This document shows positions 17,476-19,989 of a DNA stretch of 64,000 nt, in pieces. The stretch covers positions 76,474,345 to 76,538,344 of the forward strand of contig NC_083405.1 of the NCBI RefSeq assembly GCF_020745735.1. The letters run 5' to 3'. Within the stretch, counting starts at the first letter, position 1, and each line of letters starts with the position of its first letter. This DNA comes from Hemiscyllium ocellatum (lineage: Eukaryota). Made by a program: the position numbers and the translations under genes. The notes under the pieces are model-generated. The model ran no database searches. It had not been told where the DNA came from and was given only the letters and a program-made list of their open reading frames with translations.

Positions 17476-17625
17476 GGAGTTAAGATAATTGTATTTCCAG
17501 AGAAAGGTATCCATGGCTTGCATCTCAGCAGACCTGCTCTTTTTCCCTATTTGGAGCCTATTCCAGATCCTAATGTTGTTCAATGGAATCCCTGCCTGCA
17601 TCCAACTGCATATAATGATACAGAG
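17476..17625 (+). CDS. Biotinidase-like copy A, coding exon 2
   Basis: 150 nt, ttgcag/gtagga; IIVFPEKG keeps the catalytic Glu (17500-17502) but the next Asp is Lys. Confidence 0.95.
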
Positions 17626-17896
17626 GTAGGAGTGAGACAATATTTGAATTTGTTTATTTGTTTTTACATTTTAAGAATGTTTGTAGCTTTTTGTGGAACT
17701 CTCAGTTATAACCATTTAGACAACACTGCTTCTATTTTATACAGAATGCTTTATAAAAAGATCGATAGCCATTGTTTGGAATGCAAAATTAATTTTACAT
17801 GATAAATTTCTCTACAATTTAAAGCATTGTGTCTATGGAACTAGATTTGTATCACTATTAACATCTGAATTTTGAAAATGGTGCTGATTTTGACAA

Positions 17897-18038
17897 AGTT
17901 AGAAGTCAGGTAGCTGCCTGATGAAGGAGCAGCATTCTGAAAGCTAGTGCTTCCAAATAAACGTGTTGGACTATAACCTGGTGTGTGAGTTTTCACTTGG
18001 TCCACCCACCCCAGTCCAATACTAGCACCTTCACATCA
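17897..18038. mobile_element. Short Penelope-derived element in copy A intron 2
   Basis: CTGATGAAGGAGC...GAAAGC motif; 12-bp flanking direct repeat tgattttgacaa at 17885-17896 and 18039-18050. Confidence 0.7.
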
Positions 18039-18822
18039 TGATTTTGACAAGTTAATGCTGTTGAATCGTACGCCTGATATGGAGACATCTAATAAGGAGT
18101 GTGGAATGGGGATTGGGTTGTAATCCCTCCATCGATTTTCACCCATTTCTTACCGGACAGAAACCCATCACAGAATCCAATATGCACTCATAGCAGGTGA
18201 AGCTTTTCGCTGAATGCAATTTTGTAAGAATATCTCAAATATTTAATCAATTAAGGGAAGAGGACTGTGTTATGGACATTGCCCTATGAAAGGTCTTTCA
18301 GACAAATGAAGCAATGATCAACCTTGAATAAAATTAAACATTCCCCAGCTGTTTCATATTTAGACTGACAATTCTCTATTCTTTCTTTCCTCAGAAATCT
18401 ACCTTCTATTTATTATTAAGTTCTCCTAATAACAAGTCATGGAGAGAATAATTCACCATTGGCTGAATCTCACATTCTATTTAGCAAAGTGAGAATTCTG
18501 TTGAGACTTTTTGCAGGTTATTTTACCATGTCTTCCTTGAAAATTGCTGCACTGCTTACAAAAATCATGAAGAACTGTGCAAAATGCTTCCATTGGAGTG
18601 TACCTTTGTTGGACTTGTTATCTGATTCTGCTACATATCTCACTCATGTGCCCATCTCACTCATACCCCTATAAGGTTCCAACCAACAATGCATTAAATA
18701 AACCACTGCATTAAGATACCCTTTGGGAGTGAGGAAATTATTTTGCAGAGAAATGTATAAATGATCAATTGTACTTTAATTATGTTAAAATGTAATGACT
18801 TCTCATGCCTGGTCTATTGTAG

Positions 18823-19989
18823 GTGCTTCATCAGCTGAGCTGTATGGCAAGGAACGGCAGTATGTACTTGGTTGCAAACATGGGAGAGAGACAAACCTGT
18901 GAGCAAAGCGATCCCAAATGTCCACCCGATGGAAGATATCACTTTAACACAAATGTGGTTTTTGATGCTGAAGGTACTTTCATTGCGAAATACCAGAGAT
19001 GGAACCTTTATTATGGAAATATTTATGACAAACCCAAAACAGTGCAACACGTCATCTTTAATACATCATTTGCTGGAAGATTTGGCATCATAACTGGCTT
19101 TGATATATTGTTCTATGAGCCAGCAGTAAGTTTAATTGAGAATTATGATGTAAAACAAATTGTATTTCCTACAGCCTGGATGAACCAATTGCCCCTCTTA
19201 TCTGCCGTACAGTTTCATCAAGCATTTGCTACTGCATTTGGGATCAATCTTTTCGCAGCCAATCAGCATCATCCTGAAGATGATATAACAGGAAGTGGTA
19301 TCTACACCCCATTAGATTTCCCCTATTATTACAACTCCGAGAGCAGCGAAGGTAAACTTCTTGTGGCCAAGGTCCCTATAATCACATCCCGTCAAAATCA
19401 CAGCCTACAACTTGAGGTGACGGCAGCACTTCTTAAAGGGAACAATTATTTTGAAGCTTTTGTCCTTCAGAAGAAGGGAGAAAAGCAGGAACAAATTGGC
19501 CCAATGGAAAGAAATGATCCTGGTGATATTTTTCATAATATCATGATGTATGATAATTACACATTTATCTCTTTGACAGGTTTAAAAGGTAGTCTGCACA
19601 TCTGTTCCAACACCCTCTGTTGCCATGTAGCCTACAAACGTAGCAATGATACAGATGGTAATCTGTATGCATTGGGAGTCTATGATGGGTTTAACAATAG
19701 GGTTTTTGGCGCTTATTACACACAAGTGTGTACCTTGGTGAAGTGTGCAGGCTCAAGTTATGACACGTGTGGACAAAATGTTACAACTGCCTCTGATATC
19801 ATAGACTTTGGATTATGGGGGAATTTCAGCGCAACCCATATTTATCCAGAAATATTGGCAGATAAGATGAAAATTTATCGTGCCGATACCAGAGGATGGG
19901 CTAACAGTAATTATTGTATGATCAAGAAGGGGATGTCAGCAGGTCTTGTCACTGCAGCACTCTATGGAAGGTGGTATGAGAAAGATTAG
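18823..19989 (+). CDS. Biotinidase-like copy A, coding exon 3; whole protein 509 aa
   Basis: ttgtag acceptor; open to TAG; FNTNVVFD, TAWMNQLPLL and ALYGRWYEKD motifs; catalytic Lys is Arg (18997-18999) and catalytic Cys is Gly (19096-19098). Confidence 0.95.
   Translation: MLHQLSCMARNGSMYLVANMGERQTCEQSDPKCPPDGRYHFNTNVVFDAEGTFIAKYQRWNLYYGNIYDKPKTVQHVIFNTSFAGRFGIITGFDILFYEPAVSLIENYDVKQIVFPTAWMNQLPLLSAVQFHQAFATAFGINLFAANQHHPEDDITGSGIYTPLDFPYYYNSESSEGKLLVAKVPIITSRQNHSLQLEVTAALLKGNNYFEAFVLQKKGEKQEQIGPMERNDPGDIFHNIMMYDNYTFISLTGLKGSLHICSNTLCCHVAYKRSNDTDGNLYALGVYDGFNNRVFGAYYTQVCTLVKCAGSSYDTCGQNVTTASDIIDFGLWGNFSATHIYPEILADKMKIYRADTRGWANSNYCMIKKGMSAGLVTAALYGRWYEKD

Follow-up and report, generated by a model that had tools for sequence, protein, structure and literature searches.

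A biotinidase-like gene of hemiscylliid sharks without its catalytic nucleophile: a candidate pseudoenzyme whose last exon exchanges sequence with an active neighbour

To our knowledge, biotinidase (BTD) and the related vanins have been studied only as enzymes. Vertebrate BTDs consist of a CN_hydrolase domain followed by a Vanin_C domain, with a signal-peptide-like N-terminus and conserved structural cysteines and N-glycosylation sequons, and the catalytic Lys, second Glu, and nucleophile Cys are invariant in all 78 distant vertebrate BTDs that we examined. The closest solved structure to the gene described here is that of human vanin-1/pantetheinase (PDB 4CYF, 7SLV), an active glycosylphosphatidylinositol (GPI)-anchored ectoenzyme with the catalytic triad E79/K178/C211 (PMC5541922). 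Cephalopod symplectin, a member of the same family, has been recruited to a non-amidase role as a photoprotein, and expansions of symplectin-like paralogs carry altered triads, E-K-S and E-R-S (PMC5541922). Here we describe two tandem biotinidase-like genes, copy A and copy B, found by open reading frame (ORF) listing and self-comparison of a 64,000-nucleotide stretch of the epaulette shark Hemiscyllium ocellatum (GCF_020745735.1, contig NC_083405.1, positions 76,474,345 to 76,538,344; hereafter the window, which is vertebrate DNA with a GC content of about 0.40). Copy B retains the complete catalytic tetrad E-K-E-C of the family; copy A is without three of the four residues and has an intact reading frame.

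A previous reading of the same DNA by eye and ORF list (the sequence-only reading) had proposed that copy A lost its catalytic machinery in a concerted manner and was repurposed under selection. Every substitution which that reading listed for copy A relative to copy B is present at the codon level, including the change of MTGSG to ITGSG (M276I) and N57F (Table 1), and the ORF is indeed intact: spliced copy A comprises 1530 nt including the stop codon, encodes 509 amino acids with zero internal stops and no frameshift, and is identical to H. ocellatum RefSeq XP_060681679.1; spliced copy B encodes 511 amino acids and is identical to XP_060681491.1, both proteins being named 'biotinidase-like'. 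The Glu of the triad, Glu80, is kept in copy A and is invariant in a 65-sequence alignment, but the catalytic Lys is now Arg180 and the nucleophile Cys is now Gly213. Alignment to vertebrate sequences, which had been suggested as a check, supports these assignments: columns K180, E186, C213, and M276 are 100% conserved in the 78 BTDs, and in a HMMER alignment the triad positions of human vanin-1 align residue for residue, with R180 of copy A opposite K178 and G213 opposite C211. Residue 186, to judge from its position and invariance, is presumably the second active-site Glu of the amidases (E142), found 6 to 8 residues after the Lys, and copy A has Gly there.

Enzymes of this superfamily work through a thioester intermediate, which cannot be formed with glycine in place of the nucleophile, and for this reason it is as good as certain that copy A is catalytically dead as an amidase. 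Its ancestry, domain architecture, and fold thus place copy A in the BTD/vanin family, but with Arg and Gly at triad positions 180 and 213 it cannot count as an active enzyme of that family. That copy A still hydrolyses substrates by way of another nucleophile or mechanism, or that its remodelled pocket has acquired a new catalytic activity, we think most improbable. Glu80 is retained, the changes cluster around the pocket, and cephalopod relatives carrying Ser instead of Cys, E-R-S triads included, are functional or have at least been maintained (PMC5541922), all of which would suit such an altered enzyme; the Lys-to-Arg change of those triads is also that of copy A. The symplectin-like proteins, unlike copy A, keep a potential nucleophile (Cys or Ser), and the new function of symplectin uses a Cys in the base domain (PMC5541922). 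Against an altered enzyme, Gly has no side chain to serve as nucleophile, the neighbouring Thr212 is also present in active copy B and so is not new, Lys180 and Glu186 are lost too, and the loop carrying residue 186 is modelled less confidently in copy A than in copy B.

In other respects copy A resembles an ordinary BTD. It has the CN_hydrolase and Vanin_C architecture, the signal-peptide-like N-terminus, and the conserved structural Cys residues and sequons; it is 47-55% identical to tetrapod BTDs and about 40% identical to vanin-1; and it lacks, relative to copy B, a short Cys-rich C-terminal tail. Exon 3 alone matches Pfam Vanin_C at 6e-31 and CN_hydrolase at 4.1e-5, the latter just above the curated cut-off, and matches the human vanin-1 structures with an E value of about 4e-93 (HMMER). 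Copies A and B each have three coding exons separated by phase 0, canonical GT-AG introns, and human BTD presumably shares with copy A a large last coding exon preceded by small ones. AlphaFold2 models built with the 65-sequence alignment are of similar quality for copies A and B (predicted local distance difference test, pLDDT, 80.1 and 79.7; predicted template modelling score, pTM, 0.83 and 0.81), and the copy A model superimposes on vanin-1 (7SLV, 4CYF) with a template modelling (TM) score of 0.91; the only clear difference between the models is the loop at 181-190, with pLDDT 48 in copy A and 66 in copy B. Copy A is therefore predicted by modelling to keep the fold despite the loss of catalytic residues.

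The loss can be dated by comparison with other sharks, and it was stepwise rather than concerted as had been claimed, because Gly213 is common to Chiloscyllium and Hemiscyllium and K180R and E186G are found only in Hemiscyllium. The nearest proteins in the databases belong to other orectolobiform sharks. Copy A orthologs in Chiloscyllium punctatum (two assemblies) and C. plagiosum have FPEKG, Phe57, Phe31, and Gly213, and keep Lys180 and Glu186. In whale shark and zebra shark, copy A has the complete E-K-E-C tetrad and FPENG, and Asn81 is found in the copy A lineage of whale shark, zebra shark, Mustelus, and Scyliorhinus; Lys180 is encoded by AAA in copy B and in all the other sharks examined. 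The reported D81K is therefore a true difference between the paralogs but not an evolutionary step, since the copy A lineage already had Asn81 in other sharks and the step was N81K. On these comparisons, N81K, N57F, Y31F, and C213G arose in the hemiscylliid ancestor, and K180R and E186G later in the Hemiscyllium line.

The same comparisons speak to assembly quality. A consensus error at codon 213, which had been named as a possible refutation, is ruled out: the codon is GGC in both H. ocellatum and C. punctatum copy A DNA, and Gly213 is present in four assemblies of three species (H. ocellatum, C. punctatum twice, and C. plagiosum). For K180R and E186G the one source is the H. ocellatum assembly, as would be the case if these two changes were consensus errors and only C213G were real. 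We consider this very unlikely, since K180R and E186G belong to a run of five changes within 13 codons (174, 180, 184, 185, and 186), unlike isolated base-call errors, and the copy A frame is intact; the main conclusion, in any case, does not depend on them. Copy A appears to be a dead biotinidase paralog specific to the Hemiscylliidae; the loss of the nucleophile is shared by, and the dead state conserved across, the three hemiscylliid species compared.

The persistence of Gly213 has to be viewed against the unusual history of the exon in which it lies. Copies A and B are 70% identical in exon 1, 83% in exon 2, and 95.7% in exon 3, and the similarity stops at the exon borders. The tree of exons 1 and 2 unites the orectolobiform A copies (100/99) and separates them from the B copies, whereas exon 3 gives a tree in which A and B cluster by lineage (100/100). 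The conflict between the exon trees and the difference in A/B identity by exon show that the duplication is old and that exon 3, which is 76% of the copy A coding sequence, is in concerted evolution through gene conversion. Conversion is still ongoing, as six derived bases at polarised sites are common to A and B in Hemiscyllium only, and as B-like patches at 186-191 and 274-276 of C. plagiosum copy A lie on either side of an unconverted Gly213 (these patches and C. punctatum copy B were compared as proteins). Gly213 thus persists in three species despite conversion of exon 3 with copy B. The same concerted pattern in exon 3 is seen between whale-shark A and B. As a separate observation, the tree of exons 1 and 2 groups H. 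ocellatum A with C. punctatum A to the exclusion of C. plagiosum A (96/80), contrary to taxonomy, and the first two also share states at 188, 191, and 274-276 that C. plagiosum A does not have; incomplete lineage sorting would be one possible explanation, and conversion in C. plagiosum another.

Copy A of Hemiscyllium also carries a private remodelled block at codons 408-422, with about 10 base changes and an in-frame 3-nt insertion, the only indel in copy A. The block hits the family-invariant His412 and sits in a strand of the base domain (DGLHT.HGTYY) that varies hardly at all among vertebrates; it could have originated by template switching, by conversion from an unseen donor, or by selection.

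What, then, has kept copy A open? We place just on the probable side the explanation that copy A is a non-catalytic, folded, probably secreted glycoprotein under constraint at the level of the fold only, and so a candidate pseudoenzyme. The evidence for constraint is as follows: i) no stop or frameshift is found in copy A of the three hemiscylliid species, whereas some 2-4 nonsense mutations and 2-4 frameshifts would be predicted on the tree under strict neutrality (a stop arises from about 3.3-3.9% of random substitutions, and non-coding alignments give about 0.03 frameshifting indels per substitution), so that the joint probability of zero disabling events is roughly 0.001-0.01, a rough figure, and an underestimate if exon 3 is repaired by conversion from copy B; ii) among 50 replacements between the dead orthologs only 8 are radical (BLOSUM62 of -1 or less) against 45% expected from mutation alone (p<1e-4), and the mean BLOSUM62 is +0.32 against an expected -0.33 (p=0.003); iii) among 30 substitutions that are private to one dead copy, and so cannot derive from copy B, 5 are radical against the same 45% expected (p=0.001); and iv) copy A has kept its start codon, splice sites, and TATA box along with all ten structural Cys and seven N-glycosylation sequons, and none of the lesions typical of pseudogenes (stop, frameshift, lost splice site or start) is found in the 1530 nt of copy A, exons 1 and 2, which are not converted, being intact as well.

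The early substitutions are of another kind. Six of the 11 on the shared hemiscylliid stem are radical, including N57F, C213G, and Y274D, and substitutions lie within 6 residues of a catalytic residue more often than the 8.8% expected, both on the stem (4/11, p=0.012) and on the Hemiscyllium branch (6/13, p=5e-4). Proximity here is distance along the sequence rather than in three dimensions, and in this sense the substitutions are indeed not random relative to the catalytic residues, as the sequence-only reading supposed. A burst of radical changes at the active site followed by conservative drift is the pattern that a shift to a non-catalytic role would leave.

Several observations weigh against constraint, and are what would be expected if copy A were instead a functionless open relic, an unprocessed pseudogene drifting neutrally since the loss of the nucleophile and held open by chance and by conversion from copy B; we take this seriously, although we judge it to fall short of probable. 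Rate tests, which had been proposed as a check, give no signal of selection. The pairwise maximum-likelihood ratio of nonsynonymous to synonymous rates (omega; GY94, F3x4) between H. ocellatum A and C. punctatum A is 0.87, no different from 1 (p=0.62), whereas the intact whale-shark/zebra-shark A pair, of similar divergence, gives 0.37 (p=0.001 against 1), and the dead pair is significantly the higher of the two (p=0.027). An NG86 estimate of 0.62 (p=0.046) was set aside for the maximum-likelihood value, obtained with a kappa of about 5.5. Coding divergence (5.1%) matches that of intron 1 and flanks (4.2-5.0%) and of the 3 kb upstream (4.4%); the intron 2 alignment is 10.7% divergent. Family-invariant positions are hit as often as by chance: dead-copy substitutions fall in columns conserved in at least 90% of vertebrates in 14/24, 9/24, and 5/13 cases against 44% expected, whereas such columns are spared in those paralogs and orthologs whose tetrad is intact (0/7, 1/8, 0/11, and 2/14). 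Over the same species split the dead A copies differ at 50 residues and the B copies at 29, a 1.7-fold faster divergence. The further loss of catalytic residues in Hemiscyllium is as expected once the site is useless, and the Hemiscyllium changes form two tight clusters, codons 174-186 and 408-421, each of which could have arisen at one stroke, by mutation or by conversion, and not through selection. A search of the protein collection with copy A residues 150-300 gave no evidence of a transcript or protein, and in particular no transcript-derived fragments. Finally, because conversion from copy B, documented down to the A/B-shared sites found only within Hemiscyllium, could repair exon 3, the intact ORF stands as an observation but is weaker evidence of selection than had been assumed, 76% of the coding sequence being in the converted exon.

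Yet a relic does not readily account for all of the data. Radical replacements are down to about one-third of random expectation even among private substitutions; zero stops or frameshifts in three lineages has a joint probability that rises only to perhaps 0.05 if conversion halves the exposure; conversion that repairs the frame should have restored Cys213 in at least one of the three species and has restored it in none, even in C. plagiosum A with its B-like patches flanking Gly213; and the unconverted exons 1 and 2 are intact with conserved splice sites. Both sets of signals fit selection that now filters only replacements damaging to the fold. If about three-quarters of the roughly 45% of mutations that are radical were removed and the rest were neutral, omega would be about 0.65-0.8, which lies inside a rough interval of about 0.55-1.4 around 0.87 (derived from 55 non-synonymous and 23 synonymous differences, and not a formal confidence interval), and so constraint and a neutral-like omega are compatible. 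Selected repurposing, as first proposed, draws on the loss of three of four tetrad residues with an intact ORF, Gly213 in three species, the clustering of changes, and the depletion of radical replacements, and finds no help in the rate tests; relative to a relic we regard it as somewhat more likely, not as demonstrated.

The comparisons give copy A the following history. An old duplication produced genes A and B, which in the orthologous shark loci lie beside a TPP-enzyme gene resembling HACL1, and copy A remained catalytically competent in whale and zebra shark, where the tetrad is kept. The common ancestor of Chiloscyllium and Hemiscyllium then exchanged Cys213 for Gly, together with the radical changes N57F, Y31F, N81K, and those to the 274-276 motif, after which the Hemiscyllium line lost Lys180 and Glu186; exon 3 continues to be homogenised with copy B, Gly213 nonetheless being retained in three species. 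Selection after the loss would have acted on foldability only, so that conservative replacements built up about as fast as neutral change, once-invariant sites included, and radical replacements, stops, and frameshifts were removed. The copy A protein would most likely act by binding rather than turnover, whether by holding a biotinyl or pantetheine-like ligand uncleaved, by pairing with active copy B, or through its Vanin_C base domain. A pocket of this fold without a nucleophile is still able to hold a ligand, because several Cys-to-Ala mutants of related amidases have, according to their PDB entry titles, been crystallised with bound substrate; copy A might do so by analogy, although its loss of Lys180 and Glu186 may weaken ligand binding.

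Table 1. Codons, exons, and other features of copies A and B, with positions in the window
Feature	Positions	Strand	Copy B to copy A	Remarks
N57F	16997-16999	+	AAC to TTC	
Glu80	17500-17502	+	GAG	Kept in copy A
D81K	17503-17505	+	GAT to AAA	
K180R	18997-18999	+	AAA to AGA	Catalytic Lys
E186G	19015-19017	+	GAA to GGA	Presumed second Glu of tetrad
C213G	19096-19098	+	TGC to GGC	Nucleophile Cys position
M276I	19285-19287	+	ATG to ATA	
Copy A coding exon 1	16829..17041	+		Start codon, signal-peptide-like N-terminus, Y31F, N57F
Copy A coding exon 2	17476..17625	+		Catalytic Glu80 kept, then Lys81 (FPEKG)
Copy A coding exon 3	18823..19989	+		Rest of CN_hydrolase, then Vanin_C, stop TAG; K180R, E186G, C213G, M276I
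Copy B coding exon 1	32426..32638	+		70% identity to copy A exon 1
Copy B coding exon 2	35882..36031	+		FPEDG; 83% identity to copy A exon 2
Copy B coding exon 3	44609..45781	+		K180, E186, C213 intact; likely conversion partner of copy A exon 3
Remodelled block, copy A codons 408-422	19681..19725	+	AYDGLHT-THGTYY to VYDGFNNRVFGAYY	
Palindromic oestrogen-response-element core	16677..16689	+		GGTCATTCTGACC (GGTCAnnnTGACC), perfect match

A perfect palindromic oestrogen-response-element core, the only exact match in the window, precedes the ATG of copy A by about 150 nt; some 55 nt separate it from a downstream TATAAAT at 16744-16750. The element is identical in the C. punctatum copy A promoter and has 2-3 mismatches in whale-shark and zebra-shark copy A, and the 500 nt preceding copy B contain nothing within 2 mismatches of it. 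It was gained on the same branch on which Cys213 was lost, which is suggestive. The longest identical run in the 3 kb upstream, 115 nt (16616-16730), includes the element; such a run is not beyond chance at 4.4% divergence, and we do not count promoter constraint as evidence. One could imagine that in these oviparous sharks copy A is an oestrogen-induced, secreted, non-hydrolysing binder of biotin, biocytin, or another acyl-amide ligand, a carrier or sequestering protein destined for plasma, yolk, or egg, so that gain of the element and loss of the nucleophile would be a single functional switch, and remodelling of the Lys/Glu loop in Hemiscyllium would tune binding; we consider this specific scenario unlikely. 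The notion that sharks would need a substitute for avidin was rejected, as Chondrichthyes have avidin genes (PMC13425791).

In the orthologous loci of C. punctatum and zebra shark (Stegostoma tigrinum) the genomic setting agrees with that of vertebrate BTD: a TPP_enzyme (HACL1-like) gene lies directly upstream of copy A, and HACL1 is the neighbour of human BTD as well. Fragments of long interspersed nuclear element (LINE)-type reverse-transcriptase ORFs (Pfam RVT_1) are found between copies A and B (28114-28965 and 29372-29908, plus strand) and within the 8.6-kb second intron of copy B (40476-41063, minus strand). Both copies also have Gln (AVQFH; in copy A at 19210-19212) where vanin-1 has the buried interface residue Glu249; whale shark has Glu. 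Vanin-1 reportedly loses its activity when this residue is mutated to Gln (E249Q; PMC4834066), which suggests that the interface requirement at this position differs in biotinidases.

Among 150 representatives of the wider family, 96 have E-K-E-C and about eight, single predicted proteins that are mostly invertebrate and in several cases partial or of low quality, have no nucleophile at all. Such vanin/biotinidase-like predictions occur in an annelid, a vent snail, a cockroach, a mirid bug, a beetle, and a chiton; like copy A, those of Owenia fusiformis, Gigantopelta aegis, Blattella germanica, and others have Gly, Asn, or Ala at the Cys position of an FTCFD-like motif, but unlike copy A they are uncharacterised single predictions without cross-species support. 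Among the cases compared, only the shark copy A is backed by orthologs in three species, and no other falls within the vertebrate BTD clade. We would class it as a non-catalytic and lineage-restricted variant, new to the BTD/vanin family.

A literature search for dead biotinidases or vanins, or for shark BTD duplicates, returned nothing relevant, and in the sequences and literature searched we found no other vertebrate member of the family that gave up catalysis and yet was kept. Should copy A prove to be no more than a gene in slow decay, the implication would be more modest: proteins annotated as 'biotinidase' or 'biotinidase-like' in Hemiscyllium and Chiloscyllium are not to be taken for active enzymes. 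The loss of a nucleophile that persists in an exon continually converted by an active neighbour bears on the interplay of selection and gene conversion, and a dead paralog in three sharks would be a natural experiment on what else this fold may do: carry a ligand, regulate an active paralog, or serve in adhesion through its base domain.

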